A model generated the notes under the pieces. That model did no database searches and was not told the DNA's origin. It saw nothing but the letters and a program-made list of their open reading frames with translations. From the IMG/VR virus record IMGVR_UViG_3300027759_006101, positions 124,001 through 188,000 of that record: 64,000 nt of DNA; one strand, 5' to 3'. Position 1 is the first letter of the stretch, and each line of letters starts with the position of its first letter. Shown one piece after another: positions 12,516 through 48,754 of the stretch. The translations under genes and the position numbers were made by a program.

Positions 12516-12986
12516 TCAATCATCACATTCATTGTAATATCCGTTATCGTTAGGGCATATTACATTATCTTCTTCATTTGCTGCAAAATGACAATAAGAT
12601 AAATCTGAGTGAGCAATTAATAATTTCATCATTACTTCATACAAAATTGGGTCTGTGCAATATGGCGTATATATTTGCATTACTTTATCGTAATTGACAA
12701 GAATAAATTTCTTATCGTTTAAGCTGATAGTGAAAAATTTATTAAGTTCAGTTTCAACAAAAAATGCTTGTAATCCAGGAACATTTTTCTTTAGTGAAGC
12801 CCAATTTATTCCGATATTATTTTGTGCTGGAAAAATACTCTTGCCCCAATCTTTGAGACGTAAAATAAGTTCAACATCGTATGAAGATTGTCTTGGTAGA
12901 TTATAGATATCAATTATTTTCATTTCTATTTGCATTATACCTAATCTATGGTACGCTGTCCGTATGAAGCATACAATTACTATCAT
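12516..12986 (-). CDS. hypothetical protein (true start probably more internal)
   Basis: ORF upstream of gmd. Confidence 0.55.
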   Translation of the reverse strand: MIVIVCFIRTAYHRLGIMQIEMKIIDIYNLPRQSSYDVELILRLKDWGKSIFPAQNNIGINWASLKKNVPGLQAFFVETELNKFFTISLNDKKFILVNYDKVMQIYTPYCTDPILYEVMMKLLIAHSDLSYCHFAANEEDNVICPNDNGYYNECDD

Positions 12987-13146
12987 TGATGAGAACTTTG
13001 AAGAGAAAAGTCTTGAATTGACTTATGCTCAATTACAAGAACTTAATCGTTGGTTAAATATTTATTTAAACACAGGCAGAACGCTTGAATATAAGTTAGA
13101 CAAAAGGACTAAAAAAGTTATTGATGTAAAGCTTGCACAGATGTAA
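12964..13146 (+). CDS. hypothetical protein
   Basis: 60-aa ORF upstream of tRNA-Arg. Confidence 0.5.
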   Translation: MKHTITIIDENFEEKSLELTYAQLQELNRWLNIYLNTGRTLEYKLDKRTKKVIDVKLAQM

Positions 13147-13893: not shown

Positions 13894-14271
13894 ATGTGGT
13901 ATAGGTATTCAATGGTTAGAAGAGTTAGCCTGGTAATATTGTTTGATGATGATAAGGTTTTGCTCGGTAAAAAACCTAGTGGATTTTGGATACCTGGAGG
14001 TCACGCTAACTCTGGCGAATCTTCAAAAGATGCTGCAATAAGAGAACTCAAAGAAGAGACTAATCTTGATTTATCTAATTTAAAATTATTTTATTCTAAG
14101 ATTACTGAAAATAAAATTGTAGATGTTTATGTGTGCAACGAATTTTCTGGAGAATCAAAGGCGGATGATGATTTAGAGGAAGTCCATTGGTTTAGTGTCA
14201 ACGAACTTCCTGAAATGCGATTAGATGGAAATGAATTAATTCAACAAGCTTACAAAGAAATATGTTTGTAA
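13894..14271 (+). CDS. Nudix hydrolase
   Basis: Nudix box PGGHANSGESSKDAAIRELKEETNL. Confidence 0.9.
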   Translation: MWYRYSMVRRVSLVILFDDDKVLLGKKPSGFWIPGGHANSGESSKDAAIRELKEETNLDLSNLKLFYSKITENKIVDVYVCNEFSGESKADDDLEEVHWFSVNELPEMRLDGNELIQQAYKEICL

Positions 14272-15284
14272 CCAACATATTCATAAAATTCTAAAAGCTC
14301 TTGTGCATTAAATCCTCGCATTCTTCCTTCATTTAGTAAGTTATTCTTTAATTCTTCTTTCCAAGTTTTGTAATTTGGACAATCTTGATCAAACCAATAA
14401 TTTTCCAGCAATTTGTAATTTATAGCAGTTATGTCGTGTGACTGGCCATATGGAAATTTATAAAATCTAAATGTATTTTTATAATTTGTAAAGTCTGTAT
14501 TGAAATATAATTGATTTCCCATTGCAGCTTGCGCAAAATTTATTTTATCTAAAACATAATCATCACAAAATAAATAAAAGAATAAAACTTCTGTCACCCA
14601 CCCCAAATAACCATAATTTCTTCCAGGGATTTGACCTAGCATTTTTTCATACTTTTCTTCAAAAGTAAGATTTTTTAACTCAGGATGAAACTTATTTATT
14701 TGACTTACAAAGAAAGGTGGAAATTTTATTGTTTTTTGAAAATTCATAAAATTTTCTGTATTATCAAGAAACAACATTTTTTTAAAAAAATCTTTGCCCT
14801 TCTCTAAAATTTTTTTTCTTGAAATAAAGAAATGGTCTCCAGGAAAAAAATAAAATATTGATTTAGATACGTTGTGTGTATTTATAAAATTGCATCCAAG
14901 CTCATTTGCAACTTCCACCATAGGCAATATCCTAGCCCAATCAAAAGCGTATTGAGTGTAAATAGCTCTTCCAAAACAAAGACTTCCCCAATCTGAAGTA
15001 AAAGTACTATCCATAGCTAAATGAATCTTGTGTACGTGAGCATCAGGATCGGATTGACAAGTTATCAAGTATTCTGGAAGATTATCCCAATTTTCTAAAA
15101 TCCAAGTTGAAAAAATTCCAGGAAAGCCAAAACTTGAATCCATTTTGATATCATCTTTATGCGGATTGTCACCAACACAAATTACAGTTTTTGGATATTT
15201 TATTTTGTCTATAAATTTACTTCTGTCTTCATCTTTGTAATATACTAAAACGTGTTTATCTTGCATTTTTTTCCTCTTGTTCAT
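14250..15284 (-). CDS. DUF3431-like putative glycan-modifying protein
   Basis: WDNLPEY..CQSDP..H and FFPGDHFFISRKKI resemble DUF3431. Confidence 0.5.
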   Translation of the reverse strand: MNKRKKMQDKHVLVYYKDEDRSKFIDKIKYPKTVICVGDNPHKDDIKMDSSFGFPGIFSTWILENWDNLPEYLITCQSDPDAHVHKIHLAMDSTFTSDWGSLCFGRAIYTQYAFDWARILPMVEVANELGCNFINTHNVSKSIFYFFPGDHFFISRKKILEKGKDFFKKMLFLDNTENFMNFQKTIKFPPFFVSQINKFHPELKNLTFEEKYEKMLGQIPGRNYGYLGWVTEVLFFYLFCDDYVLDKINFAQAAMGNQLYFNTDFTNYKNTFRFYKFPYGQSHDITAINYKLLENYWFDQDCPNYKTWKEELKNNLLNEGRMRGFNAQELLEFYEYVGYKHISL

Positions 15285-15447
15285 TATACATTTTACAAAG
15301 ATGTCTGATTGATGATAAAGAACATTACATTTGGAGGGCAGTAATGAAACTTAAATTATCACCAATGGAGTTGATAATTTGCTTAATGGTGATAACAACA
15401 CTATTAGCAATTTTTATTCCAATATTTCTTTTAGCTTGGTCAACATT

Positions 15448-15819
15448 CTAATTATCAACAATAGTATAAGAAATACAAGTTGTAGGAGGACCAAAACCTT
15501 GCAAATATCTTACTTTGACTGATTCAACAAATCTACTTGTGTCATCAGGAATAATTTCAGCTCTAACAAGAAGATCAACAATAGGCTTTACAATATTGTC
15601 TGGGTCGCTTCTCATTTTCCATTGTGTATCAGCAAGAATAAGAATTTCTATTTCTATTGGGTAATTTGTTGCTGGTAATAAATTATCTTTAATGATTAGG
15701 ACATTCTTTTCTATCCAATCATTATATTTTTTGCTTTTCACCATTTTTCCACGAGCAACAGGAGCATACATCTTATTTGCGGAAAATGGTTCTTGGATAG
15801 TACAAGATTTTTTAAGCAT
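15448..15819 (-). CDS. rusA: RusA-family Holliday junction resolvase
   Basis: PFSAN.MY, DPDNIVKPIVDLL..IIPDD. Confidence 0.8.
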   Translation of the reverse strand: MLKKSCTIQEPFSANKMYAPVARGKMVKSKKYNDWIEKNVLIIKDNLLPATNYPIEIEILILADTQWKMRSDPDNIVKPIVDLLVRAEIIPDDTSRFVESVKVRYLQGFGPPTTCISYTIVDN

Positions 15820-15861
15820 ATAAGATTTGTACAGAGATAGTATAGGTAATAAGAAAAAATT

Positions 15862-16947
15862 ATGTGGTATAAATTAGCACAACAATTACAACTTCCTGGG
15901 TTAGATATAGAACAATCCCAGCCAAAAATTAAAGAAAAACCAGAACCAAAAGATAAATCTCCAGAACTTTTAGAAACACAAAAAGAACCTCAAAGTTTAT
16001 TCTTTAGTGATTGGGCTAAAGGTCATTATGTGCCAGAGCAACCTGTCTATCACGGAACAACACACGAATTTGATAGATTCGATATTGACAAAGGTTCAAT
16101 GAGTAATTATTTTGGTCCAGCATTTTATTTTACTAGTGATGAAGAAGATGCTTCAAAAAATTACACTGGTACTGGGCCTGATCAAGAAAGAAACATTGAA
16201 AATCTTCAATATGATTTGCTTGATCAATATGGTGAAGACGAATATTATCTATGGAATTTATATAGCGATGATCCAAGATACAGTAAAGATTTCAATGAAG
16301 ATGGCAAACCATATAACCCAAATTATCTAGCAGAAAAAATTGCCAAAGATACAATTTTAGGACCAAATAAGCCTAGAGTAATTCCTGCTCACGTTAGAAT
16401 GAAAAACCCAATTCATCTGACTAGTTCACAAGATGCAGAACATCCTGAAAAAGTTTTCATTGATGATGTAGAAGGTAGTATGGATTTTTTAGGTAAAAGA
16501 ATCAATCCTTCTGACAACCATAATTTTAGTACAGTTATATCAAAACTTCATAATATTATAGTGGACTATTTGGATTTTGATATTGCTAATGAAATTTGTG
16601 AAGAATTAGTTCAAGAAAATTCTGTTGGGTTTGATGAAGAAATTTCAGCATCTTCAATAATTATGGACTTGATTAAAAAATTAGAGTTTTGGGACCGGGA
16701 TCAAGATACACATTTTAAAGGTGATATTGTCAAAAGATTTGTAAATTCATTAGGATACGATAGCATTGTTATGGATCCTAATGAATTTTTCAGAATGTAC
16801 TCTCAAAAAAGACCAATCAAGCATTTCATCACTTGGAATCCTGAAAACATTAAACACGCCAGAGAAAATATAGAGTTTGACCCAGGGAATCCAGTTATCA
16901 CTGCAATGAGTGGTAAAATTAATTTATGGAAGAATTCTTTGCTGTAG
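15862..16947 (+). CDS. ADP-ribosyltransferase-like protein (ART-PolyVal-like)
   Basis: VYHGT..FDRFD..FGPAFYFT..A..Y, MKNP, GYDSIV and C-terminal PENIK..FDPGNP. Confidence 0.65.
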   Translation: MWYKLAQQLQLPGLDIEQSQPKIKEKPEPKDKSPELLETQKEPQSLFFSDWAKGHYVPEQPVYHGTTHEFDRFDIDKGSMSNYFGPAFYFTSDEEDASKNYTGTGPDQERNIENLQYDLLDQYGEDEYYLWNLYSDDPRYSKDFNEDGKPYNPNYLAEKIAKDTILGPNKPRVIPAHVRMKNPIHLTSSQDAEHPEKVFIDDVEGSMDFLGKRINPSDNHNFSTVISKLHNIIVDYLDFDIANEICEELVQENSVGFDEEISASSIIMDLIKKLEFWDRDQDTHFKGDIVKRFVNSLGYDSIVMDPNEFFRMYSQKRPIKHFITWNPENIKHARENIEFDPGNPVITAMSGKINLWKNSLL

Positions 16948-17288
16948 TTTTCATCGAGTGTATGATGGAAAATAATAGATGTTTTTCAGAAAAAGATTTT
17001 TATAATTTACTCAAAACACAAAGGTTGGATTCTTCAAAAATAAATTTCAATGAAGTAATGAAAGAATTTCTTACAGAATTTGAATTAACATCATATGAAA
17101 AAATTGATAATATTTGGCAGCCTAAAGGAAAATTTATTTCTCACAAAGCAATTTCAAATATAATAGATGAATTAGATTTACATTTAGAAGTTGAAAATTC
17201 ATTAGGTGGATTTTACGAAACAAGTTGTGATGTAGTGCAAAAAATCAATAATTATCTTTGGTTGTGTGAAAAAGAAGCTCTCCAATAA
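16926..17288 (+). CDS. hypothetical protein
   Basis: 120-aa ORF coupled to the previous gene. Confidence 0.55.
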   Translation: MEEFFAVVFIECMMENNRCFSEKDFYNLLKTQRLDSSKINFNEVMKEFLTEFELTSYEKIDNIWQPKGKFISHKAISNIIDELDLHLEVENSLGGFYETSCDVVQKINNYLWLCEKEALQ

Positions 17289-17334
17289 AGGGGGGCTTAT
17301 TTTTTTGATAGAAACATAATGTGAGGAACTAAAA

Positions 17335-17688
17335 ATGAAAAATCATTTGAAATTATTCAAACTTTCACAAAGGCTTGATAAAAATAATTTATATTCACTA
17401 GCTGACAAAATTGATAGATTGGCGCAAAACCAAACTAAAAATTTTGAGAATAAACAGCAAGCTACAGATTATATAAAGAATTTAGGTATGCCAAGCTTTT
17501 CTCAAAATATGGATAAAGCTGCTGATGAAGGCGTTACAATTAATGGTATTTCTATCAAGAACGATCCAGAAATGCAGAAATTATACAAAGATAGTTTATC
17601 ATCAGGAGGCGCAGTTGCAATGCCAGCAATGGCACCAATGCCTATGCCTATGCCAGCACCAATGCCTTCAGTTCCGCCCGTAGTTTAA
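17335..17688 (+). CDS. leader-family protein (divergent) with Met/Pro-rich tail
   Basis: LSQRLDKNNLYSLADKIDRLAQ resembles the shared leader; AMPAMAPMPMPMP tail. Confidence 0.6.
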   Translation: MKNHLKLFKLSQRLDKNNLYSLADKIDRLAQNQTKNFENKQQATDYIKNLGMPSFSQNMDKAADEGVTINGISIKNDPEMQKLYKDSLSSGGAVAMPAMAPMPMPMPAPMPSVPPVV

Positions 17689-17764
17689 TTCGCATCCCAA
17701 ACCAAAAAAAACAGGGGCTACTTTTTCAAAGCCCCTGTTTTTTTTGGTTATTGGTCTGCTTTAA

Positions 17765-18073
17765 TTACTTCGATAGAGGATCGTTTCGACGGCCACCTTC
17801 ACGACGATCATTAGCTGGAAGAGTTGTCTTTGTTACAAGCTTTAACCCGTCAACACTAAATTGATAAAGAGTGTTGCCAGAAAGAACATAAACAAAATTA
17901 CCAGATGCAGCAACAGAAGCAGCACCACCACCTGCTCTCATCCCAACACCCTGACCAAGAGGGAATGGAGTTTGACCTGGGCGTGGAGCTTCTTGAATTC
18001 CACCTGGAACCTGTGCAAATGCTAGCCCGAAAACAGCCAATGAAGCTGCAAGAGAAACCAAAATTTTATTCAT
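17765..18073 (-). CDS. small secreted protein
   Basis: Signal peptide ending AFA-Q; beta-strand motif FVYVLSGNTLYQF. Confidence 0.65.
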   Translation of the reverse strand: MNKILVSLAASLAVFGLAFAQVPGGIQEAPRPGQTPFPLGQGVGMRAGGGAASVAASGNFVYVLSGNTLYQFSVDGLKLVTKTTLPANDRREGGRRNDPLSK

Positions 18074-18189
18074 AATTTTTACCTCTGTTCAATAGACGAA
18101 CAATGTTATTATATGTTCAATAAATGAGTAAAAGATTAAGATAGATCTATAACAAAAAAAAGATCTACTTTCGTAGATCTTTTTTAGAA

Positions 18190-19086
18190 TTATCTTACTT
18201 GAAATCCGTTTTGATCAAGTACTGGAAGATTGCCAGCAGTATATACTTGTTTACCCCAGAGGAAATTATTTGGATTTACTGTGGTTTCAAATCTCATAAA
18301 CTTTGAGTGGCCATCTGCAAAAGTATAATTTGCGCCACCTGTATGTCTGTCAGCTTGAATGTATGCAATTTGTAAAGCACCACCAGCATATCCAGATGAT
18401 TTGCAAGTAGCCCAGGCACTTGCAGCCAAAGATGGAGTGACTGCATAAACTGCTGACAGACTTGGCGCAAACTGTGATAAATCTTCACCCTTCCAAGTTC
18501 CGCCACTCACACTAGTCATAAATGCATTAGTACTTCTGTGGCTCTTGTTTACATAACCACCAGAAGAAGTACCAGCATTAGAAGTGTCATTAATACAAGC
18601 TAATGTATTTGTCATCTCTGCTACTACAATTGTATCTGCTGCAAACTCAATAGCTGAAACAGAAGCAACATTAGCAGGATCAATGCTTCTACGCTTTCTT
18701 GGTAATACGGAAGCATTAGCAACATAAGAAATTCTTGGTGCTTGTAAATCTAAACCTGGGTTAGTAGGAACAATTCCCTTATTTGGATCTGATGGACAAA
18801 CAAATACTGACCAATTCTTTACGTATGGATTAATAAGTCCTGACCATTGATTATATCCATTAGTACCGTTGGAATCATTTGTATACCAGTATGCTTGTGG
18901 ATAAGTTTCATCATAGTCTTGAGCATACATAGTAATACCAAGTCCCATTTGCTTGGTGTTTGAAAGGCAGGATGCAGAACGAGCCTTTTCACGAGCTTGG
19001 GCAAAAACAGGGAAGAGAATTGCAGCCAAAATAGCGATGATTGCAATGACAACGAGTAATTCAATAAGAGTAAACGCTTTTTTCAT
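18190..19086 (-). CDS. prepilin-type N-terminal cleavage/methylation protein with H-X9-DG C-terminus (DUF1559)
   Basis: [39 protein letters not shown]; C-terminal [14 protein letters not shown]. Confidence 0.92.
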
Positions 19087-19208
19087 ATTAGTTTCCTTTT
19101 AGAAATCTTGTTATTATTATTCCGCTTAATAAAAAGACGTATATTAAGGTTTTAGACAAAATTCTTAACATAAAGGAACAGTCTTCTTTTATTCCCTATA
19201 ATAAAAAT

Positions 19209-19694
19209 ATGAATTACAAAATCAAACTCAAACAAAAAAAATATTTGTTCTTAGATATTGATGGAGTATTGAATTCATTTGATGATTATAATATGACAGG
19301 TAATGAATTCATAAAAAACTTAAAGAATATTTCATTTATTACTAGCAAAAAACAAATGTCTATATTGAATAACATAGTAGAAGAATATAATCCCACAATA
19401 ATATTATCATCATACTGGAGAACAAGATATTCTTTAGAAGAATTGAATAATATATTTAGGGAAAATGGTTTTGTGGGCAAGATATCTGGAATTACTAGCA
19501 AAGAGGGCGAAGAACACAAAGATAGGTGGAATCAAATCAAACTATATATAGATAAAAATAAAGTTAAAGATTATATTATATTAGATGATGAAGAAATAAC
19601 CAGAACAGAGAGAAAAATAAATAACTTTGTAAAAACAAATTCTTATGAAGGTTTGACAGAAAAACATTTAAAAGATATAGGAAAAATCTGGTAG
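19209..19694 (+). CDS. HAD-superfamily protein (HAD_SAK_2-like)
   Basis: FLDIDGVLN, ILSSYWR, YIILDDE and GLT motifs. Confidence 0.8.
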   Translation: MNYKIKLKQKKYLFLDIDGVLNSFDDYNMTGNEFIKNLKNISFITSKKQMSILNNIVEEYNPTIILSSYWRTRYSLEELNNIFRENGFVGKISGITSKEGEEHKDRWNQIKLYIDKNKVKDYIILDDEEITRTERKINNFVKTNSYEGLTEKHLKDIGKIW

Positions 19695-19700
19695 GACAAT

Positions 19701-21011
19701 ATGGCAAAATTTATTCGTGCAAGTAAAAAATTTATCAAGATATCTCAGAGTGAAGAAAAATATTATCATGGCACAACTACTGGTGAAAATGATTCAATTC
19801 TTAAAAGTATTATATCTTCAGGCATAGACCCAAAAATTGCACAAGGATTTGGGCAAGGAGCTGGGTTTTATGTTTTCAATAGCATAAATCAAGCTAAAAG
19901 GCAAGCTATGTCACTTAATAGTTTCTTTAGTGGCAGTGAAGTAACATTTGAATATGTGGGAAACCCAGATACTATACCAGGTGGATATCCAATGGTGGTT
20001 TCACTTCCAGTTGATTTAAAATCAGAAACATTTGATTTAGATTATGAGTCATTGCCACGATTTGGATTTTTTATAATAAGAGAAATGTACGACTTGATAA
20101 AAACTTTGCCGCAAGATGCTTTTGCTGAATTGGATCTTTTGGGAAATAGGCCCTCCGCAATACCGGAGCACACTACTATAGATTCTTCTTTATTAGGCGA
20201 TGGTGAAATAATAAGATTGAGGTCAAAACCAAAACCTATTCAAAAACAAAAACGCACACGTAAACAAAAAATAGCATTTTATGTCAAAGACACGCTAAAA
20301 GAATATGAGACTGGAGATGTCGGAACTGGTTATACTTATCATAAAATTTTAGAAGTTCTTAAAAAATATTTTCCAGAGGAATTCAAGAAAGCAGAAGAAA
20401 AAGTTTTTGAAATTTTAAAACCTCTTGAAAATTATGATTATAAATCAGACCATCCCGATGTGGATTGGAAATATGGGACTCAACCTGTAGCTTTTAAATA
20501 TAACGGAAAATACAATATTCATATCGACCCAGCTTTAGACATTATGGTTTACTTTAACAATAATTGGATAAGTGGTCAAGAATATATGCAGCAAAAGGAT
20601 TCTACTAACAATACTGAAAATAGCACATCAGATTCTCAGAACACAAAGACATCAAGGAATAAAAATATGGCAAAATTTATCAAGACAGCATTATTAGAAG
20701 TAAGAGAAAGAACTGAACAGCAAGAAGTTCAATTAGAAGAAGTAAGAACTGGTGAAACATATACTTCTCTTTATGACGCATTACAGAAACAACATAAAAC
20801 TGTAGATGCTCAGACACTTTGTGAACTCTTTACTCCTCTCCATAAAAATACAAACTACAATTCATTAGAAGAAGCTTTAGGTAATAAGGCGGGTTTGTAT
20901 GGTAGAAAAAACGAAGAATTAGCAGAAAAATCATTCTCAGAAATATTAGAAGAAATTGAAAAAGGTTTCCCAGAAGAAATTCTTGAGTTACAATTAAGAA
21001 ATAAGAAATAA
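19701..21011 (+). CDS. ADP-ribosyltransferase-like protein, apparent fusion of two ORFs
   Basis: YYHGTT...GFGQGAGFYV; internal second MAKFIK start near 20667. Confidence 0.5.
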   Translation: MAKFIRASKKFIKISQSEEKYYHGTTTGENDSILKSIISSGIDPKIAQGFGQGAGFYVFNSINQAKRQAMSLNSFFSGSEVTFEYVGNPDTIPGGYPMVVSLPVDLKSETFDLDYESLPRFGFFIIREMYDLIKTLPQDAFAELDLLGNRPSAIPEHTTIDSSLLGDGEIIRLRSKPKPIQKQKRTRKQKIAFYVKDTLKEYETGDVGTGYTYHKILEVLKKYFPEEFKKAEEKVFEILKPLENYDYKSDHPDVDWKYGTQPVAFKYNGKYNIHIDPALDIMVYFNNNWISGQEYMQQKDSTNNTENSTSDSQNTKTSRNKNMAKFIKTALLEVRERTEQQEVQLEEVRTGETYTSLYDALQKQHKTVDAQTLCELFTPLHKNTNYNSLEEALGNKAGLYGRKNEELAEKSFSEILEEIEKGFPEEILELQLRNKK

Positions 21012-21218
21012 TTGGATTTATAGCTAATAGACAAAACTATTAGCTATAATAAATTTAACAGGTGTAATAAGATGAAAAATAAACTTTCAAAAGAACAACT
21101 TGATCTTTTAAATAAATTTAAAAACACAAAAGATAATAAAAGCGCTGCAAACTTAAATGAAAAAACTGAATCAAAAATTAATTCAGTTTCTCATAGACCA
21201 AACTTAAGAAGAAGCGGA

Positions 21219-21482
21219 TCAAGGGGTAAGTGACGGACTCCAATCTGGGCCTGCCAATACTTCCAAGAATTCTTCATAAGTGTAATACTGAGTTTTAGTA
21301 GTTAATGATTCAACACAGTTAGGTACAACTTGCCCCTGCCACTTTACAAATGTCTTTAATCCATCAACACTTAAACGCAAAGTGTCAGCAGATGTTTCAA
21401 GTACTTGTGTAAAATCAATCAAGGGTATTTCTGTAACGTGAAAAATAACAAATGTTCTGTCCATATTTTTATTATAAAACAA
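21219..21482 (-). CDS. conserved small phage protein
   Basis: IDFTQVLETSADTLRLSVDG.KTFVKW is typical of phage hypotheticals. Confidence 0.65.
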   Translation of the reverse strand: MFYNKNMDRTFVIFHVTEIPLIDFTQVLETSADTLRLSVDGLKTFVKWQGQVVPNCVESLTTKTQYYTYEEFLEVLAGPDWSPSLTP

Positions 21483-21535
21483 AAGGTAGGGTTAGTTCCT
21501 TCTTTGAATAAAAAAGAATGTTCGGGGACCAAATT

Positions 21536-22588
21536 ATGCATAAAAAAATAGTACTTAATAAATTGCAGAAAATTGCAAACTTATTTGATCAATGTCAACA
21601 TCACAATCAAGCAGACCAAATAACTCAAATAATGCATAAAATAGCGCAAATTGGTAGCGCTGGAATTTACAAGCCAAAAGGAAGCTCATTCCTAAGCTCA
21701 CAACCTGACTTGGCAATTATTGAAAGCAAAAATAATATTCCAAATGATTTATTATATTACGCCGCATCAGTAACACAAAGAACTAAAACCCCAAAATATG
21801 ATCAAGAAAATTTTGAAAAAACATTAGCAAAATTAAATTCTATTAAAAATAATCCTAAAGTAAAAGATAATTTTCCAAATATTTCAAGCAGTGTAGATTC
21901 TGCTATTGATTTGTTGAATTCAAAATCAAATCAATCTGGTGAAACTAAAACTAAAAGCACATATATAGAAAGATTACCTAGTTCAAAATTAGGAGACTAT
22001 GCTTCTCCAGCTGATACAACTTTTAAAACTCAAGATACTCCATTTGATGATTTAGGACAATTTTTAGATCCATATCAAAATCCGCTTTTGCAAATGGGCG
22101 GTGGTTTTGGCGATATTGTAGGCAATGATCCAGAAGATAAAGCAAAAGACTTTATAAAAAATAAATTTAATCAAGCAAGCTCAAAATCTAAAAGACAAGC
22201 CTCAATACTAATGATGGCTATAAAATTAAAAGAAGATTTAGAAGATGGAGTCAAAGCTTTATTTAATTATTATGATGAAAGAACTTTGATGAAATTATTA
22301 AAAGAATCAAATATTATAGAACAAAATGGTGATATTACAGCAAGACCATTTGATTATTCTGAACTTATTCAAAAATTATCACAGTTAGAACCAACTTCTC
22401 CGCCAGATATGCAAACAACTTCTGGAAATAATAGTTATGGCAGTCTGGAAGAAGTCAAACAAAATTTATTATCTACAGTAGAAACTATCGATAAATTTCA
22501 AGTGTCTATATCACACGCACACGATGTTCAAAGAGAACAACAAAGAGAATTAAATGATTTACAGGGTGATACTATTCCCGACGAATGA
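21536..22588 (+). CDS. leader-family protein
   Basis: MHKKIVLNKLQKIANLFD...ADQITQIMHKIAQ leader plus unique cargo. Confidence 0.75.
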   Translation: MHKKIVLNKLQKIANLFDQCQHHNQADQITQIMHKIAQIGSAGIYKPKGSSFLSSQPDLAIIESKNNIPNDLLYYAASVTQRTKTPKYDQENFEKTLAKLNSIKNNPKVKDNFPNISSSVDSAIDLLNSKSNQSGETKTKSTYIERLPSSKLGDYASPADTTFKTQDTPFDDLGQFLDPYQNPLLQMGGGFGDIVGNDPEDKAKDFIKNKFNQASSKSKRQASILMMAIKLKEDLEDGVKALFNYYDERTLMKLLKESNIIEQNGDITARPFDYSELIQKLSQLEPTSPPDMQTTSGNNSYGSLEEVKQNLLSTVETIDKFQVSISHAHDVQREQQRELNDLQGDTIPDE

Positions 22589-22801
22589 AACAAATCTACA
22601 ACAACTTATTACTAAGAAAATAAATAAACTGTAAAGAGCTATAGCAATCCTATAGCTCTTTCTTTTTTCCCAATTATATTTGTGTAAATAATATCCACTT
22701 GTCCACATCAACATAGCATACAAAAACCACTGGATTATAGTCTCACTATCAAAAGCCCAAAAAAAATAAAAACATAGTTGAATAAAAAATACAATTCTCA
22801 C
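22559..22801 (-). CDS. small membrane protein
   Basis: Three hydrophobic stretches. Confidence 0.45.
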   Translation of the reverse strand: MRIVFFIQLCFYFFWAFDSETIIQWFLYAMLMWTSGYYLHKYNWEKRKSYRIAIALYSLFIFLVISCCRFVSFVGNSITL

Positions 22802-22875
22802 AAGCTTATTATAAAAGGATAATTATCGATATATTTGTAAAAATAAATTAATCACCTTTGATAAGGAAAAAAAAT

Positions 22876-23784
22876 ATGAACAATAAACAAATTGTAGCTT
22901 CACTAAATCAAATTGCTAATGAACTTGATAGCAATGGACTTTATCAAGAAGCTAATGTTGTTACCAATGTTATGGTAAAAATTAGTCAATCTGACTTACA
23001 ATATTCTGGTTCTTCGAAGTATAAGCCGTATGCTAATTTAAGTCCTCAAAGTGTTAATGTCGGCAACGCTGCAGGAAGCACTGCGGGTTCATCAACGACT
23101 GATGAACAAACTTTCAATCAGGCTATTGAACATATAAAAACGCTTTTAAATATGGGCGAAAAAGAAGGAGCAAAAAGTATATTTTTCGATACTCTTGAAA
23201 AACTTACAGAACCTGCTCAACGTGAAAAGTTTAGAAATACGTACTATGAATTAACAGCTCCTTCAGCTTCTCCAAATGCACCAGTCACTAAGCCAAATGC
23301 ACCATCTACTCCAATTGGTACACCTAAGCCATCAGTGCCAGGTAAACCATCCCAGCCAAGTTCCAAACCTGGTATGCCATCCAACCCTGGTAGCTCAAAG
23401 CCTTCAGCACCAAAAAGCGCAGATGGGTTAGACAGATGGGTAAATAAAGCTGAAAATATTTATTCAGCTTGGGTAACAAAAGGGGCAAAGCCAGGTTCAT
23501 CAGCATTTGGATTGATCAAAGATGTTGTAGACTATATGCAAAATGTTAAATCAAGATTGCCATCATCTTTGCATAGCTCTGCAAATGCAAAAATAATCAA
23601 AGTACAAAAAATGATGCAAGATATATTTGATGGAATGCCAGACCCAACTAAGACTGTTGGAGTAATGCCTTATTATGGTGTAAGTGGAGTTAAGGGCAAA
23701 AGTGTTAATCCTTTTGCAGAGGGCGATCGTCTAGAAGGTAAAAAGCTAGATTATCAAGCCGACTACGAAAGTAAAAGATACTAA
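22876..23784 (+). CDS. leader-family protein with Pro/Ser-rich linker
   Basis: MNNKQIVASLNQIANELDSNGLYQEANVVTNVMVKISQ leader. Confidence 0.8.
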   Translation: MNNKQIVASLNQIANELDSNGLYQEANVVTNVMVKISQSDLQYSGSSKYKPYANLSPQSVNVGNAAGSTAGSSTTDEQTFNQAIEHIKTLLNMGEKEGAKSIFFDTLEKLTEPAQREKFRNTYYELTAPSASPNAPVTKPNAPSTPIGTPKPSVPGKPSQPSSKPGMPSNPGSSKPSAPKSADGLDRWVNKAENIYSAWVTKGAKPGSSAFGLIKDVVDYMQNVKSRLPSSLHSSANAKIIKVQKMMQDIFDGMPDPTKTVGVMPYYGVSGVKGKSVNPFAEGDRLEGKKLDYQADYESKRY

Positions 23785-23817
23785 TAAAAAAAGAGGAGCA
23801 AAGCTCCTCTTTTTTTA
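23785..23817. terminator. bidirectional rho-independent terminator (inverse near-copy at ~27653-27681)
   Basis: AAAAAAGAGGAGC-AAA-GCTCCTCTTTTTT between convergent genes. Confidence 0.8.
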
Positions 23818-23829
23818 TTTAAAATCAAA

Positions 23830-24243
23830 TTATAATAAAATTAATTTTTCAGCTCTAATTGTAAAGTATCTACTTAATAATTTTCCATTTTTAATTGAAC
23901 GTACAACTACAAAATCTTTTTCATCTGATACAAAATCATCACAAACTACGCCAAACTCTTCCTCGCCTTTTCCATCAATCCATTTTACTTTGGTGCCAAC
24001 AGTAAATTTTTTCTCTTCAACTAAACTCCAAACTTTGCTCAACTCTTCTACCTGCTCATCTGTCAATAATCTTAACTCGTTCAATTTATCCAACAAGTTT
24101 GATTGACTAACTTTGTAATTTGTTATCTGAGTGTCCAAATTATCATTAAGTTTTATTAACATTTTTCTATCATTATTTTGCTTCCATATGATAAAAAATA
24201 AAACCAAATTTATTAACACAGACAATACTAAAAAATAAATCAT
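23830..24243 (-). CDS. membrane-anchored coiled-coil protein
   Basis: N-terminal TM, heptads, SH3-like C-terminal part. Confidence 0.6.
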   Translation of the reverse strand: MIYFLVLSVLINLVLFFIIWKQNNDRKMLIKLNDNLDTQITNYKVSQSNLLDKLNELRLLTDEQVEELSKVWSLVEEKKFTVGTKVKWIDGKGEEEFGVVCDDFVSDEKDFVVVRSIKNGKLLSRYFTIRAEKLILL

Positions 24244-24482
24244 TTTTTTGCACCTTTTGATTGCTTGAAATTTTTAGCAAACTTTATCATTTCATTTACT
24301 TTTTGCTTACTATAAATTTCAGAGCCATAATTCTTCATCATTACATCAACTGTTTTAGAAAAATCTTTTGCCTTTGTTGATGAAGAATAAAAACTTTTTG
24401 CATCGCCGTGACAAGTCTTGCAATAATTATTATAGTCAATCTTAGAATCTAATAATATCAAAAAATAAATAATATTAATCAT
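24240..24482 (-). CDS. putative monoheme c-type cytochrome
   Basis: Hydrophobic N-terminus, YCKTCHG heme-binding motif, distal Met in TVDVMMKNYG. Confidence 0.55.
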   Translation of the reverse strand: MINIIYFLILLDSKIDYNNYCKTCHGDAKSFYSSSTKAKDFSKTVDVMMKNYGSEIYSKQKVNEMIKFAKNFKQSKGAKK

Positions 24483-25069
24483 ATTACTTCTCTCAAAACC
24501 TCATATATCAATTCCCAATTTTCTTTTCTTGTAGAATCACTCTTTGCATTGTTGAATATCTCTATAACCTTTCCATCATATTTTGCAGTTATATAAGTAT
24601 TGTTGTCAAATAAGCCATCTAACAAATTAAACTTTGTTTCATCATTACAGATAAAACCAACATAACCAATTACTTCGTATCTTCCAGAACAAATATCCCT
24701 AAATTCTTCATACAAAAATGGTAATTCCCAATTTGGGTCATAAAGATAATATTTGTTGCTGTTTTCGCAGTTATTCAACCATAAACCAGTAGTCCTAATT
24801 TTCTTCTGATCAGATAATAAATTTTTCCAAGCTTTCTTGCAAAAATTAAATGTCCTAGTATGACCCTCACAACTAGGTAATGTTTTAAAACCATTTTTAT
24901 TTAAGAAATTCACAATCTTGCTTATTGCCGGATCTAATGTTTCATCGAGTTCAGTAAAATTATAGTCAGAAATTACTCTTTCTTTATAATAGTACCAGTA
25001 ATTATGATCTTCACTGTAAAACCAATCATAATTTTTCAATTTATCAACAGTAATAGGATTTATTCTCAT
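24479..25069 (-). CDS. conserved hypothetical protein (LNKxGxxTxxSCEGH family)
   Basis: LDPAI..IV.FLNKNGFKTLPSCEGH. Confidence 0.6.
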   Translation of the reverse strand: MRINPITVDKLKNYDWFYSEDHNYWYYYKERVISDYNFTELDETLDPAISKIVNFLNKNGFKTLPSCEGHTRTFNFCKKAWKNLLSDQKKIRTTGLWLNNCENSNKYYLYDPNWELPFLYEEFRDICSGRYEVIGYVGFICNDETKFNLLDGLFDNNTYITAKYDGKVIEIFNNAKSDSTRKENWELIYEVLREVI

Positions 25070-25151
25070 AATATATTTTTACTCATAACAAAACAAGATT
25101 CCTAAAAGGACCTTAAGAGAAATAGATAAAATAATAAATATGGAGTAAATT

Positions 25152-25934
25152 ATGAACAAAAGACAAATAGTAACAGCATTAAGTAATATTGCTAACACTC
25201 TTGACAATAATCGCCTTTATCCAGAAGCTAATATTCTTACCAAAGTAATGAATAAATTAGCACAAGAAGATTCAAAACCAGAATATGATTATACTAAAGA
25301 AAGACTATATAATACTTTATCTGATTTTGGTAAAGAGTATGTAGCAGATAGAAATAGGGAAAATCCTATTACATCTTATAAGGAATTTGATGCTGCTATT
25401 TATCATGCTTTTCAATCACCTAATCCAAGAATAAGTGAAATGATGTTCCTAAGCCCATTTGAACAAAGCCAAAATGTTTTCACACAAATAAATCCAGATG
25501 TCTCAGAACTACTAAGAGGTATGTTTATGATTGACAGAGGGATTGACAATGATAAAACATTCCAAAGCTTCAAAGGTTCTATATATCCTGCACTAAAGAA
25601 AAAAATGCAAGAAAGACCAAGCACTGAAACTCTTGATTTGACCACTGGAATTGTACCTTTTGGAAGAAAAACAACTAATAAAAGTAATGAATATCATAAA
25701 CTTTTGAGAAGAGCAAAATCATTACTCAAAAAAGCTGCTGGTGAATATTGGAATCAATCTGGCGCACAATCTTCTATGGACAATTTACTCCGATACATTA
25801 TAGATGATAGTTATAATTCAGAATATAGAGATGAAGCTTATAGTATCATGGAAGAAGCGCAAAGATTACATGATCAATTAAAATCAGATGAAGCTAATAT
25901 GCCAAAATATACAATAGATGTACCAAAATTTTAA
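25152..25934 (+). CDS. leader-family protein
   Basis: MNKRQIVTALSNIANTLDNNRLYPEANILTKVMNKLAQ. Confidence 0.8.
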   Translation: MNKRQIVTALSNIANTLDNNRLYPEANILTKVMNKLAQEDSKPEYDYTKERLYNTLSDFGKEYVADRNRENPITSYKEFDAAIYHAFQSPNPRISEMMFLSPFEQSQNVFTQINPDVSELLRGMFMIDRGIDNDKTFQSFKGSIYPALKKKMQERPSTETLDLTTGIVPFGRKTTNKSNEYHKLLRRAKSLLKKAAGEYWNQSGAQSSMDNLLRYIIDDSYNSEYRDEAYSIMEEAQRLHDQLKSDEANMPKYTIDVPKF

Positions 25935-25944
25935 GGAAAAAATA

Positions 25945-26415
25945 ATGAATAAAAGACAAATTATAGCGTCCCTCAACAAGATTGCTAATGAACTCGACAC
26001 AGCAAAGCTTTACACAGAAGCAAACACAGTAACCAAAGTTATGTCCAAGATCGCTATGGACGGAAACGATGAATATGGCAGTATGGAAGATATGGGTTAT
26101 TGCCCAGAATGCGAAGAATTCACTCTAATAGACGGAAAATGTGAACAATGCGGTCATGGCGAAGATGAAGATTATCCAAACCGTAATCTTACAAATAGAT
26201 TAGATGAAATTAGCAGTATGATGGATATGCATGGAAATCATCCTGCTGACAAACTTCGTGAAGATTACTCCAAAGATTATAATAACCCAACATTTTCAGA
26301 AATGAAAGATGTGTTCAGAGATTTAGATGAATTAGTTGTAGAAAATATGACGATGAATAGAGAACAAAGAAAAAGATACGAAGAAATTAAAAAGCAAATA
26401 ATGAATGCTTTTTGA
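25945..26415 (+). CDS. leader-family protein, acidic Zn-ribbon cargo
   Basis: Leader followed by YCPECEE..CEQCG. Confidence 0.8.
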   Translation: MNKRQIIASLNKIANELDTAKLYTEANTVTKVMSKIAMDGNDEYGSMEDMGYCPECEEFTLIDGKCEQCGHGEDEDYPNRNLTNRLDEISSMMDMHGNHPADKLREDYSKDYNNPTFSEMKDVFRDLDELVVENMTMNREQRKRYEEIKKQIMNAF

Positions 26416-26479
26416 TAATTTGAACTACTAAAATAAGTGGCAATAACATTTTGTCACTTATTTTTTTAAGGAAAATAAA

Positions 26480-26956
26480 ATGAATAAAAAATACATACTT
26501 ACATCACTATATAAAATAGCTAATACACTTGACAATGATGGTCTCTACAAAGAAGCTAACACAGTAACTAAAATTATGTCCAGATTAGCCATCGATGAAA
26601 ATGATGAATATAATACAGAAGATTATTTTCCATATGGCGATCCAGACGAAGATCCAGACGAATTCTTAAACGAAGACGAAGATGAAAGAGACGATTGCTG
26701 TCCAAAATGTGGTAATTGCGACGAAAGAGAAGGCAGCACAATAGTTATGGAAAGATTTAGCAATGGAGAAATTCATTATTGTTCTAAAGGATCCTGTGAC
26801 TATAATTATTGGAGTGATGCAGAAGAAGGCGTAAAACCTCCAATTTGCCCTATCTGCAAAGGAAGAGACTTCTTATTTGACGATTACTCCAACCCTCTCG
26901 CTCAATTTGAATGCGAATCTTGCTCAACAGTATTTGTTGACGGATCTGAGGCTTAG
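26480..26956 (+). CDS. leader-family protein, acidic double Zn-ribbon cargo
   Basis: Leader, D/E-rich tract, CPKC..C/CPIC..CESC. Confidence 0.8.
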   Translation: MNKKYILTSLYKIANTLDNDGLYKEANTVTKIMSRLAIDENDEYNTEDYFPYGDPDEDPDEFLNEDEDERDDCCPKCGNCDEREGSTIVMERFSNGEIHYCSKGSCDYNYWSDAEEGVKPPICPICKGRDFLFDDYSNPLAQFECESCSTVFVDGSEA

Positions 26957-26958
26957 AA

Positions 26959-27291
26959 ATGAACAAGAAACAAATTGTTGCATCATTGAACAATATTGCT
27001 AACGTTTTAGATAATACAGGATTATATAAAGAAGCTAACACAATAACTGAAATTATGTCCAGGTTAGCTATGGACAAAAACGATGAATACAATACAGAAG
27101 ATTATGGTTATTGTCCTGATTGCGGCGATTGGATTGGAGATTATGATTATTGCATAGAATGCGATTGGAACGTTGAAAAAGATGACGATGGACCAGATTT
27201 TGGTGATATAGATTTTTATGATTTTATAGACGAAGATTTTGGTGAAGAAGAAACGCCAACAAAATATACACCTGAAAAACCTGGAAAATAA
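26959..27291 (+). CDS. leader-family protein, acidic Zn-ribbon cargo
   Basis: Leader, YCPDCG..CIEC, D/E-rich tail. Confidence 0.8.
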   Translation: MNKKQIVASLNNIANVLDNTGLYKEANTITEIMSRLAMDKNDEYNTEDYGYCPDCGDWIGDYDYCIECDWNVEKDDDGPDFGDIDFYDFIDEDFGEEETPTKYTPEKPGK

Positions 27292-27293
27292 AA

Positions 27294-27650
27294 ATGAATA
27301 AAAGACAAATTATCGCATCCTTAAATGAAATTGCTAACCAATTAGATATTTCGAATTTGCACTCTGAAGCTAATACTATAACCAAAGTTATGGTAAAATT
27401 AGCCGAAGAGGAAAAAATGAAAACCAAACACTCAGAAGAAGAACTCCAAGAAGCAATGTCCGAACAAGGCATTGAAAAAGCATTCGAAACTTATAAAGAA
27501 AAAGGTGGAAGCGCAAGCAAAGAATCATACTCATCACAATGGAAATCACTCATAGGAAGAATGATTGATGGATTCACAAACAATATGGGCGTTTCAATTG
27601 CTGAAGAAAAATATAAAAGAAAAAATCCATTCTGGGATCCAAGAGACTAA
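27294..27650 (+). CDS. leader-family protein
   Basis: MNKRQIIASLNEIANQLDISNLHSEANTITKVMVKLAE. Confidence 0.8.
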   Translation: MNKRQIIASLNEIANQLDISNLHSEANTITKVMVKLAEEEKMKTKHSEEELQEAMSEQGIEKAFETYKEKGGSASKESYSSQWKSLIGRMIDGFTNNMGVSIAEEKYKRKNPFWDPRD

Positions 27651-27679
27651 TTAAAAAGAGGAGCTTTGCTCCTCTTTTT

Positions 27680-28708
27680 TTATCCCAATTTTTTCCTAGT
27701 TTGATCACTAGCTACCTTTATGTGAGCAAGCCAATCTAACATATGACCTAAAGCTACAGATGCTTTTAAACAATTCATTTGCAAAGTTCCTGAATTACTC
27801 ATCAAATGGTTAAAACTATCATAAAATGTTTTACTTATTCTTCTGCCACGTAATACACCAGAAACATCGTGGGGATCTTCATATACTAAATCAACTAACT
27901 CAACAATATCTTGAGGCTTTATACGCTCTCTATAATACTTAAGAGCATTATCCCTGATTTGTTCATGAGTTAAATCTTCATTCTTTCTCATCAATTCAAT
28001 TACATATTTATGTAAATCTCTAATCTTAGGATTCTTTTCAAATAAGAATTCTAAAGATGGATTTATAACTCTTTTCTTAATAACTTTCAACCCAGACTTA
28101 TCTTCTTCGTCTCCAGATTCCTCAAATAAATACTTGGCAATCGGCGCACCATAAAAATATGCCATAAAAGTCCACTTATTATCTATATCTAAACCTGCAA
28201 ACTCTTTCAATCCCTTTGCTAGAGTATTGAAAATCATTACAGAATTTGCAATAAAACCATACAACCCATCAATTTTTCTAATACCACTAATAAACTCTTC
28301 AACACGCTCACGAGGATCTTCTATAACCTTTACTTTATTGCACAAACTTATAAAATTTTTAGTGTCCTCAATTACCCAATTAGCACTAGTAAAACGCAAT
28401 AAAATAAAATTAATCCACTTCAACGTATGACCCTGCTCAATTGTTCCCAAAATACCCTCAAGAGCAGGTACAACTTCCCCAATAATTAATAACAACTTTT
28501 CAGCATAATCTACTATAAATGGAGAATCAGGATCTAAACCACCAAATTGCAAAACATTATCAATCTCATCTCTATCTTCGTGAAATTTTGTAACCGATTT
28601 ATGAAGAGGGCGATCAGTGAGAGGTTTTGAATCAACGCCCTCCACAGATGTTTCTACCGGACTAAAACCTTTCAAATTAGATAAATCAATAGCTTCTCTA
28701 TACCACAT
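27680..28708 (-). CDS. hypothetical protein (MWY N-terminus)
   Basis: 342-aa ORF; TATATATGT directly before the ATG. Confidence 0.7.
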   Translation of the reverse strand: MWYREAIDLSNLKGFSPVETSVEGVDSKPLTDRPLHKSVTKFHEDRDEIDNVLQFGGLDPDSPFIVDYAEKLLLIIGEVVPALEGILGTIEQGHTLKWINFILLRFTSANWVIEDTKNFISLCNKVKVIEDPRERVEEFISGIRKIDGLYGFIANSVMIFNTLAKGLKEFAGLDIDNKWTFMAYFYGAPIAKYLFEESGDEEDKSGLKVIKKRVINPSLEFLFEKNPKIRDLHKYVIELMRKNEDLTHEQIRDNALKYYRERIKPQDIVELVDLVYEDPHDVSGVLRGRRISKTFYDSFNHLMSNSGTLQMNCLKASVALGHMLDWLAHIKVASDQTRKKLG

Positions 28709-40328: not shown

Positions 40329-40451
40329 AGCAATATATTACCTCAGTTATAAAGACAATGCAAGAAAATAAATTTATTTGCGAAATAACTTTAGTTATGG
40401 TATTACCATAACTAGAATAAACCCTCAAGAAAATTCTTAGAGGATTTATTT

Positions 40452-40720
40452 GGATTTGTGGCTAGCTGGATTTCAACCAGTACGTAACACAAGGGCAGTT
40501 CTTTCGATGGTCTCTGCCTACGATGATGCCCGTGTCCTAAAAGGAGCATAGCACCCAACCACAAATCATTACACTTGGATAGATTGTTTGCGTCAACCAT
40601 CTCCAAGGTTTCAGTAAAAGATTGTGGACTTAACCACTCCAAGGTTGCTACCCTTATTTGAATCTCGCAATAGATTCTAGCCGTTCTGGTCTTTTACTGT
40701 AATGCGGATACTGACCCACA
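40452..40720 (-). ncRNA. candidate structured non-coding RNA with a tRNA-like 3' domain
   Basis: Own promoter (TTGTGC-N17-TATTAT) and terminator; nested helices whose G-U pairs work only on the minus strand; T-arm-like CTGG-TTGAAAT-CCAG. Confidence 0.6.
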
Positions 40721-40823
40721 CCAATATAATACACTATCTATGGGTAAAGCACAAGAACTATTTAAACTATTTTTAGATGAGAATTTTCTTGCAATCATAT
40801 AATACAGATGATATATTACAGGT

Positions 40824-41189
40824 ATGGAAAACACTACTGCAAAACGAATGGTAATGAGAGTTCGACTTGAGGATGTTAGCGATAGGTCATCCTGTATTGC
40901 ATATGTAGGTCAAGGTACTTGGTTTGATGGCAAGCACTTTATCGTAACACAATACAAAGCAAACCCATCAGTCTATTATTTCTTTGTTTACAATGACCAG
41001 ATTCCTTATAATTACTTTGGAGATTTCAAAGGCTCCTATGGTAAAGAAATCTGGACTGCAAATCCTGACAATGGTGAAATGGCTGGAACCACTTATATTT
41101 ACAGCCCAAGTTTAGACCGCTTGTATAAGCCTTTTAGCCCAAATCCAAATTGGGATAATTCACCAGCATTCATTTTTGAAATGAAGTAG
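40824..41189 (+). CDS. cassette protein (MENTT start)
   Basis: Leaderless promoter, family A terminator. Confidence 0.7.
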   Translation: MENTTAKRMVMRVRLEDVSDRSSCIAYVGQGTWFDGKHFIVTQYKANPSVYYFFVYNDQIPYNYFGDFKGSYGKEIWTANPDNGEMAGTTYIYSPSLDRLYKPFSPNPNWDNSPAFIFEMK

Positions 41190-41513
41190 CCTATATCATA
41201 TCCCTTGACGAAAGTCAAGGGATATATTTTTATTTGACAAATTTTTACAGGTGTGTGATTTACACACCTAAAGATAAATCCCAAGATTTTTCTTGGGATT
41301 TATTTTAAAACTCTTCTTGAACTTCTATACCATTATCATCACAATATTGGTATATTTCTTTCTTTCTTTTTTCATCTCTTCTCATTACGAGCTGATTTGC
41401 AGAGTCAAATAATAAGTAACTGTTTCTACTTTTGCGTACAAACCAGATGACAATAGGGTAATCATCTAATAACATAATCAAGCTTGGAGGGACATAGTCC
41501 CTCCATTCCTTTC

Positions 41514-48633: not shown

Positions 48634-48657
48634 AGTGTTTTATTTATTTATGGAATA

Positions 48658-48744: not shown

Positions 48745-48754
48745 AATAGGTAAA

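Follow-up and report, generated by a model that had tools for sequence, protein, structure and literature searches.

The Met-Trp-Tyr start and its genome

We analysed a 64,000-nucleotide (nt) stretch of viral DNA, hereafter the window, which comprises bases 124001-188000 of a single IMG/VR virus contig of 358,269 bp with 33.7% G+C. Three genes of the window, for a Nudix hydrolase (13894), for a protein with an ADP-ribosyltransferase (ART) domain of the ART-PolyVal type (15862) and, on the minus strand, for an all-helical protein (28708), begin with the tripeptide Met-Trp-Tyr (MWY), as a sequence-only reading of this DNA had claimed, each at the first start codon after a stop (Table 1; positions are those of the window unless the genome is named). 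This start is the core of a short, modular N-terminal tag that is under selection at the protein level and belongs specifically to one group of huge freshwater phages. Most likely it serves as a portable address label for numerous small, mutually unrelated enzymes that modify proteins or nucleotides of the host. On several genes nearby lies a longer helix-turn-helix leader, here called the hairpin module.

The source genome is that of a huge tailed phage, rated by IMG/VR as linear and about 89% complete, in which genes for a terminase, a portal and a major head protein stand beside a replication module, tail-fibre genes and a gyrase gene. Its terminase shares at most 26% identity with any deposited phage, no cultured phage comes close to it, and megablast of the window region against cultured phages gave zero matches. 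The stretch was detected in freshwater and lake metagenomes of at least 14 studies, and no RNA runs containing it were found.

The gene set used throughout was a crude one, in which the longest open reading frames (ORFs) were chosen greedily, giving 415 genes genome-wide. MWY is the commonest N-terminal tripeptide of the genome and opens 15 of these genes, against 0.21 expected. The pattern ATGTGGTAY occurs at 17 sites on both strands of the whole genome, and 16 of them are ORF starts, the sixteenth belonging to a 29-codon remnant at genome position 119056. This remnant (minus strand, outside the window) reads MWYSRIK... and corresponds to a gene of 278-281 amino acids (aa) that is intact in the relatives L015:7291, L049 and L056. 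Five related contigs carry 3-13 copies of ATGTGGTAY each, against 0-2 of a reversed-pattern control, and in the distant huge phage LR745208.1 the 9-mer is present ten times, never as an ORF start of the MWY kind. Could such numbers arise by chance, by faulty ORF calling or by plain paralogy of one family? Our gene calls are indeed crude, but 16 of the 17 sites are first start codons, the count exceeds expectation 70-fold, the tagged proteins carry different Pfam folds and the control genome shows nothing comparable, and we give this explanation virtually no credence.

Tag motif and level of selection

A profile built from 32 non-redundant tags defines the core as M-W-Y-[KR]-x-[AS]-[Q/I/K]. Met, Trp and Tyr are invariant in it, position 4 is Arg or Lys in 28 of the 32 tags and position 6 is Ala or Ser in 25, while position 7 is Gln in nine, Lys in six and Ile in six, and little is common beyond it. 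A minority class reads MWY-[SNY]-[RK], and one gene starts with MSPWYKTA, in which the tag-like chemistry is shifted from residue 2. In some families the conserved part reaches 15-22 residues, often as a short helix-like stretch that ends in Gly and is followed by a charged or Pro-rich linker. A signal peptide of the Sec, Tat or lipoprotein kind was considered and rejected, because the tags have no hydrophobic core of at least 10 residues and are followed by polar and charged residues.

Relatives of the ART gene were found on 20 IMG/VR contigs. In its orthologues (62-92% identity) the codons of the first 15 residues change synonymously and the upstream DNA diverges, yet the peptide stays the same, as seen in 14 orthologues of the gene at 15862; tags are kept in relatives down to 35% body identity. 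Among 67 distinct sequence contexts, Tyr3 is encoded by TAT and TAC, Arg4 by AGA, CGA or AGG or replaced by Lys, and Ala6 by all four of its codons, whereas the 12 nt 5' of the ATG hold less than 0.8 bit each. Since the tag codons vary synonymously and the upstream bases are nearly without information, the constraint lies at the level of the peptide.

The same data bear on a nucleotide-level explanation, in which ATGTGGTAYAGA would serve as a translation-initiation, operator or recombination signal and the peptide would be its by-product. Six of the nine core bases cannot vary because Met and Trp have single codons, and the sequence AATAA[AG]AA, 9-17 nt upstream of five MWY and three hairpin genes, suggests shared control. 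Against this, the synonymous sites at Tyr3, Arg/Lys4 and Ala6 are free and the upstream flank carries almost no information; the Lys/Arg and Ala/Ser exchanges are conservative in terms of protein; tags of 15-22 residues persist through synonymous changes; and the variants F-I-K and W-I-K preserve the chemistry and not the bases. We therefore consider a signal in the DNA or RNA very improbable.

Unrelated proteins behind one tag

When the first 25 residues were removed from the 69 distinct MWY ORFs of the phage group and the remainders compared by BLASTP, 22 body families without BLASTP relation were obtained. The MWY proteins are single-domain proteins of 74-914 aa. Pfam folds recognised among them in this genome are NUDIX, ART-PolyVal and PcfJ, and two further MWY proteins have HExxH motifs; in relatives the tag stands on Fic, J-domain and GNAT proteins and on a weakly matching SprT-like zincin. 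Most MWY proteins had no match in PHROG, Pfam and PDB-sequence searches. The description of the cargo as NAD-related, with which the sequence-only reading had started, does not fit a set that also holds PcfJ, Fic, GNAT, J-domain and HExxH proteins. Taken protein by protein, it suits the ART-PolyVal protein at 15862, and is only possible for the Nudix protein; the protein at 28708 is without a recognised function and matched neither a Pfam nor a PHROG family.

The Nudix protein matches NUDIX (PF00293) with 64.3 bits and has its Nudix box from residue 36. Its tag core occupies codons 1-7 (13894-13914) and the fold begins at about residue 9; the orthologues in L005-L012 keep MWYR and vary at residues 5-10. 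In the ART-PolyVal protein, a tag of 15 residues (MWYKLAQ..., 15862-15906) precedes a variable Lys/Glu/Pro-rich linker, followed by YHGTT at residue 63 and FYFT at residue 88. Its match to ART-PolyVal (PF18760) reaches 41.6 bits, above the curated cut-off of 31.2, and covers profile positions 8-45 of 140 alone. The third protein, at 28708, has the tag as its best-conserved window: among homologues the first 20 residues are 90% identical, against 34% overall. Its AlphaFold2 (AF2) model is poor, with a predicted local distance difference test score (pLDDT) of 52.6.

The [KR][LI][AS]Q junction and the hairpin module

The motif [KR][LI][AS]Q had been proposed to join the starts of the tagged enzymes to the ends of a 38-residue leader family, and KLAQ at 15862, KISQ at 19701 and the leader ends KIAQ, KISQ, KLAQ and RLAQ are all present as claimed. 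The proteome contains 33 copies of the motif (8.8 expected), and the first 50 residues of its proteins contain 15 (1.6 expected; at most 6 in shuffles). The genome-wide count, a check that had been named beforehand, thereby finds both MWY starts and [KR][LI][AS]Q far above expectation. In its strict form the motif is present in one of the 16 MWY proteins of this genome, and as [KR]x[AS]Q in four of them.

The N-terminal cases mostly close a helix-turn-helix module of about 35 residues, which an iterated hidden Markov model (HMM) placed on 21 genes. It is usually N-terminal, but two proteins of about 1000 residues and one other carry it at the C-terminus, and weaker internal copies occur in one protein. 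In the window, single modules (Table 1) are joined by a tandem array of leader-first genes that converges on the MWY gene at 28708; the leaders of this array end in KIAM, RLAI, RLAM or KLAE and their variable parts are acidic or Cys-rich. Three of the four array genes (25918-27650, plus strand) have acidic, Cys-rich variable parts that resemble zinc ribbons, a layout reminiscent of a constant leader joined to a variable core, yet these cores are 70-130 residues long. An ORF of 60 aa at 12964-13146 (plus strand) ends in ...KLAQM, with the junction motif at its C-terminus.

Table 1. Coordinates of the tagged genes, leader modules and reference head genes
Feature	Position	Numbering	Strand	Details
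Nudix hydrolase, MWY start	13894..14271	window	+	125 aa; Pfam NUDIX 1.5e-17, residues 9-112
ART-PolyVal protein, MWY start	15862..16947	window	+	361 aa; Pfam ART-PolyVal 2.7e-10
Leader module ending RLAQ	17347..17445	window	+	on 117-aa ORF 17335-17688; iterated HMM 3.5e-11
Fusion protein	19701..21011	window	+	436 aa
Leader module ending KIAQ	21542..21661	window	+	on ORF 21518-22588; iterated HMM 5.6e-17
Leader module ending KISQ	22882..23001	window	+	on ORF 22858-23784; HMM 4.1e-19
Leader module ending KLAQ	25158..25277	window	+	on ORF 25152-25934; HMM 1.6e-18
Tandem array of four small leader-first genes (25918, 26480, 26959, 27294)	25951..27419	window	+	HMM 3e-19 to 4e-20
All-helical protein, extended MWY tag	27680..28708	window	-	342 aa; tag = first 22 residues, 28643-28708
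Major head protein	40446-41300	genome		
Portal	48118-50499	genome		
Terminase large subunit	57846-59957	genome		

For 13 of the 15 MWY genes a hairpin gene is found no more than five genes away (p ~0.01 by circular shifts), and a leader-gene array beside two MWY genes recurs in a distant relative (L060). Because the genes cluster and the arrangement recurs there, we take the two kinds of tag to belong together. The sequence-only reading had gone further and seen the MWY starts as short variants of a targeting/cleavage tag whose junction matches the leader ends. What stands of this is a modular tag on unrelated enzymes and the [KR]x[AS]Q shared by both; since nothing else is common to them, MWY is a motif of its own and is not taken as a shortened leader. 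The more specific idea that MWY is a truncated copy of the last helix of the hairpin was rejected as well: four residues are common, and M-W-Y is without a leader counterpart.

The clustering could also mean that the tag docks, without any cleavage, to a hub other than the phage head, such as the hairpin proteins as a helix bundle, the Hsp70/J-protein system or an intracellular compartment. The proximity of 13 of the 15 MWY genes to hairpin genes and its maintenance in L060 would agree with this, the phage encodes Hsp70, DnaJ and Hsp90-like ATPases, and one relative has an MWY-tagged J-domain protein. Yet no partner was identified, the signals in the head module described below would be left unexplained, and the clustering is equally expected if both peptides are cargo tags of one system. 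On balance we regard docking to such a hub as rather unlikely.

The fusion protein at 19701

ORF 19701-21011 is a gene fusion. Its N-terminus (19701-19748) holds two copies of a tag-like F-I-[KR]-x-[AS] and ends in KISQ; residues 17-310 form a domain in which HGT, GFY and Glu-116 are all invariant in the family. Throughout this family [FW]-I-K-[IV]-S-[QA] stands directly before the putative catalytic domain, with I12, K13 and S15 invariant down to 41-44% identity, and the distant homologues P0040-42 keep W-I-K-[VI]-S-A just before YHGTTTG. Residues 323-436 (20667-21011) are a module with a Met of its own and the start M-x-K-F-I-K-T-A, which is a separate gene of 114 aa in L007 (20224-20568) and L060 (10995-11339) and also a domain of the portal-adjacent 1379-aa protein g43855.

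The sequence-only reading had spoken of ARTs in the plural. The protein at 15862 bears this out with a profile match above the cut-off, whereas that at 19701 has neither a profile link nor a significant fold link: Pfam gave no match, and profile-profile comparison (hhalign) of its family with ART-PolyVal returned a probability of 3%, hence no link. The AF2 model of the N-domain (pLDDT 53) is too poor to use, and Foldseek on this model gave only matches with E > 1, many of them to tankyrase, cholera and diphtheria toxin and Tpt1, that is, to ARTs of the PARP/toxin type. Three invariant motifs and these non-significant fold matches are all that makes the domain ART-like. BLASTP between the 19701 protein and a leader-bearing L060 protein showed no link.

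Linkage of the tag to the head module

Gene positions link the tag to the genes for the head. The MWY gene g50528 (175 aa, genome 50528-51055) lies directly upstream of the portal gene, between terminase and portal, overlaps the preceding gene by 11 bases, and is adjacent to the portal gene in four genomes (G000-G003: this genome, G000, and three relatives). All 49 full-length homologues of g50528 in a large protein collection start with MWY, and most of them run on to L-A-Q and then a Gly run. A different start peptide opens the head-module protein g56811, which also has R-I-A-Q followed by a Gly run, and the hairpin-tagged gene g56369 (genome 56369-56836) lies inside the head module with its K-[IF]-A-Q conserved. 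A further tie is the portal-adjacent 1379-aa protein, which shares a domain with the C-terminal module of the fusion protein at 19701.

The motif is, moreover, enriched there. For this count the head module was taken as the 15 genes between the major head protein and the terminase (6302 residues), which include scaffold-like proteins (genome 42020-43708 and 54374-55408) and unassigned ones (genome 52631-54306 and 55867-56400). It holds 13 matches of [KR]xAQ, against 2.5 expected from within-protein shuffles (at most 10 in 3000), a form of the motif that was relaxed after the sites had been seen. The density tops that of every 14-gene window genome-wide, seven permutations of the same composition gave 0-3 matches each in the module, and orthologues with 45-80% identity retain ten of the 13 sites. 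The density of [KR]xAQ per 1000 residues is highest in the head module (2.55), followed by hairpin genes (1.5) and MWY genes (0.98), and falls to 0.31 in the remaining genes. These observations tie the tag system to head assembly, if indirectly, and lend partial support to the sequence-only reading, in which the tags load ARTs and a Nudix hydrolase into the virion for injection. A genome search for Phage_Mu_F was negative, and an ESM Atlas search with one head-module protein, g51045, gave no match.

A capsid-loading tag as the favoured interpretation

Unrelated proteins share a short N-terminal peptide, its closing motif is found again in head-assembly proteins, and the host-modifying cargo includes an ART; taken together, this suggests a tag of the type of the capsid-targeting sequence (CTS) of phage T4. 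We tentatively favour, by this analogy, the reading that MWY is a capsid-loading tag, with or without cleavage. The steps of docking, packaging, cleavage and ejection are ones that we infer. The free Met-Trp-Tyr end would attach the protein to a prohead component during assembly, aided in some families by a further 8-15 conserved residues that may form a short amphipathic helix; the docked protein would be enclosed in the prohead and, at a later stage, ejected along with the DNA. Behind MWY, the [KR]-x-A/S-Q may be the site at which a head-maturation protease cuts off the tag, and this putative cleavage motif recurs in scaffold-like and internal head proteins. The hairpin module of about 35 residues with its [KR][LI][AS]Q end could then serve this system as another, longer tag, usable at either end of a protein.

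In T4, the internal proteins IPI-III and Alt carry an N-terminal CTS of 10-20 residues that is cut by gp21 (Mullaney and Black, 1996, summarised in PMC5694885). Both phages place a short peptide at the extreme N-terminus of unrelated proteins and have an ART among the cargo, and just as the T4 tag ends in a prohead-protease motif that is also found in scaffold and core, [KR]xAQ recurs in the present head module. The sequences are not similar, however; the core has 7 residues instead of 10-20, there are at least 22 cargo families in the group and 16 genes scattered over this genome, a second tag class of helix-turn-helix type is present, and the putative cleavage motif has a small residue or Gln where T4 has L/I-x-E. 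Membership in the T4 IP/Alt tag sequence family was rejected, as the tag profile lacks a Glu at the expected position and no Peptidase_S77 gene was found in the genome. Packaging and cleavage, which are known for T4, are predictions for the MWY tag.

In phage P1, a stretch of 30 residues at the start of DarB is enough to bring about loading into the capsid (PMC9024508). This N-terminal signal loads an anti-defence enzyme and reporters into the capsid, from which the cargo is ejected with the DNA (PMC9024508); unlike MWY, it belongs to one protein of 250 kDa, needs more than 9 residues and is not common to many genes. The MWY phage may resemble the giant phages phiKZ and SPN3US, which have many head-internal proteins, near-identical N-termini of paralogues and a cleavage motif repeated in head proteins (PMC5694885, PMC10052503), as exemplified by the SPN3US paralogues gp53 and gp54 with identical N-termini at 34% overall identity (PMC5694885). 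Their propeptides, in contrast, mostly have 80-160 residues, the motif is A/S/G-x-E and the protease, gp245/gp175, is known (PMC5694885, PMC10052503), a protease of which no homologue was detectable in the MWY phage.

Iyer et al. (2017, PMC5512222) predicted that domains of the ART-PolyVal type act as effectors that are packaged. With the polyvalent proteins of that study the present set shares ART-PolyVal, zincin-like peptidases and a HAD_SAK neighbour, and for both delivery with the DNA is predicted. Polyvalent proteins, however, combine 2-15 domains in one polypeptide, whereas in the MWY phage each domain is a separate tagged gene, as in a disassembled polyvalent protein. The MWY proteins were for this reason not classed as polyvalent proteins themselves: they are single-domain and lack the 2-15 effector domains. 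PcfJ occurs in polyvalent proteins and is absent from the text of the 2017 paper on them. A terminal peptide or hairpin also directs cargo into shells of the HK97 fold in the cases of the cargo-loading peptides of encapsulins and the C-terminal helix-turn-helix of the P22 scaffolding protein. The MWY and hairpin tags are not homologous to either, and binding of MWY tags to a shell protein is putative.

Several observations weigh against loading into the capsid, and others against cleavage. The majority of MWY genes are found away from the head module, in metabolic and small-ORF regions, and in the Nudix protein no linker separates tag and fold. A prohead protease was not found: the genome search for Peptidase_S77 was negative, and the unassigned head-module proteins, among which the protease was sought, had no Pfam, PDB or PHROG match. 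The major head protein is without a long propeptide. The strict motif [KR][LI][AS]Q, fixed a priori, has only 4 matches in the head module; [KR]xA itself is 1.8-fold enriched there, with Ser and Asn after it also above expectation, and Gln stands at position 7 in only 28% of the tag families. The cleavage-site reading is therefore a loose one, because Gln7 is rare, Ser and Asn follow too and the motif was partly set after the sites were seen.

Timed proteolysis as the main rival

The phage encodes a proteostasis set of two HATPase_c_3 proteins, ClpP, a ClpX-like ATPase with a zinc ribbon, DnaJ, Hsp70 and an S8 subtilase. These genes are located in the window at 44252-45676 and 54600-56756 (both minus strand) and in genome coordinates at 206392-206925, 286277-287632, 289885-290877, 308567-310261 and 315577-316578.

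The main rival to capsid loading is that the tag is an N-terminal degron, or a tag for adaptor binding, for the phage ClpX-ClpP, so that potentially toxic takeover enzymes would be made early and destroyed on schedule, with the hairpin as a second tag. A true ClpP (226 bits) is encoded together with a ClpX-like AAA_2 ATPase that has an N-terminal CxxC...CxxC zinc ribbon, and both genes adjoin tagged genes; such neighbours are, however, fairly likely by chance, because about one gene in ten is tagged. Tags at either protein terminus would fit, and in some families W-Y-[KR]-L/Y/F matches a ClpX signal of the pattern hydrophobic-hydrophobic-basic-hydrophobic. ClpX signals reportedly occur at either terminus, this pattern being one N-terminal class. 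The cargo (ART, Fic, GNAT, zincins) also comprises activities that a phage might limit in time. The conservation of degrons is usually loose, though, whereas the MWY tag never varies in its first three residues and, in some families, hardly at all over 15-22 residues, and a genome search for ClpS was negative. Head-module evidence aside, a degron explains the tag about as well as packaging does; it leaves unexplained the MWY gene next to the portal, the hairpin gene in the head module and the enrichment of [KR]xAQ, and we judge it unlikely.

Implications of a capsid-loading tag

Should MWY indeed load proteins into capsids, the tag would be new in its sequence, in the size and diversity of its cargo and in its hairpin companion; capsid-targeting tags as such are known, and a literature search for MWY plus phage found nothing relevant. 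A broader claim, which we hold to be doubtful, is that MWY and hairpin tags together define an arsenal of some 35-40 capsid-loaded and injected proteins per virion genome, of more than 20 enzyme families, cut by an undescribed head protease specific for [KR]-x-A|Q. Such an arsenal would span ADP-ribosylation, AMPylation, acetylation, Nudix, PcfJ, zincin and J-domain functions and would be by far the largest tag-addressed cargo system of any phage. An address label as such would imply that large phages can split a polyvalent effector into many separately tagged genes, and that head maturation includes a new protease specificity.

If the tag is an address label, a scan of genomes for MWY would list the effectors that these abundant lake phages deliver to their hosts, a list that homology searches could not give because most MWY proteins are orphans. 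So short a tag would also be a ready handle for loading foreign proteins into capsids. Even as a mark for timed destruction by ClpXP, an invariant N-terminal sorting signal used genome-wide would be unusual in a phage.

Further features of the genome

Beside the tag-gene cluster, the window encodes on the minus strand a protein with a prepilin-type N-terminus and a DUF1559/SBP_bac_10-like body (18190-19086) and a small, secreted-looking ORF (17765-18073), both of which are kept beside the cluster in the relatives L007 and L060. These two proteins hint at a host of the Planctomycetota/Verrucomicrobiota group. Outside the window, the gene at genome 66973-67968 (minus strand) matches phrog_1211, an adenylosuccinate-synthetase-like family, at 3e-68. 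From the family name we take this to be the PurZ type, which would point to 2-aminoadenine DNA.

Recurrent DNA motifs lie close to many start codons. At least 15 genes, among them those for portal and Hsp70, have GTATAAT 13-15 nt ahead of their ATG, and the ClpX-like gene has it at 23 nt; so short a distance implies mRNAs that are leaderless or nearly so. About 20 small ORFs, concentrated at 30-63 kb of the window, have [AG]TGATATA(AT) 15-16 nt upstream and are possibly an early-gene block. Neither of the start-proximal motifs GTATAAT and TGATATAAT precedes MWY genes, and for this reason the latter are without a temporal class. AATAA[AG]AA stands 9-17 nt before the ATG of 10 genes, five of them MWY and three hairpin-tag genes, with sites upstream of 13894, 15862, 19209 and 21518 in the window and upstream of genome positions 56811, 61590, 77485, 231009, 235909 and 289367, and may be a shared initiation or control element.

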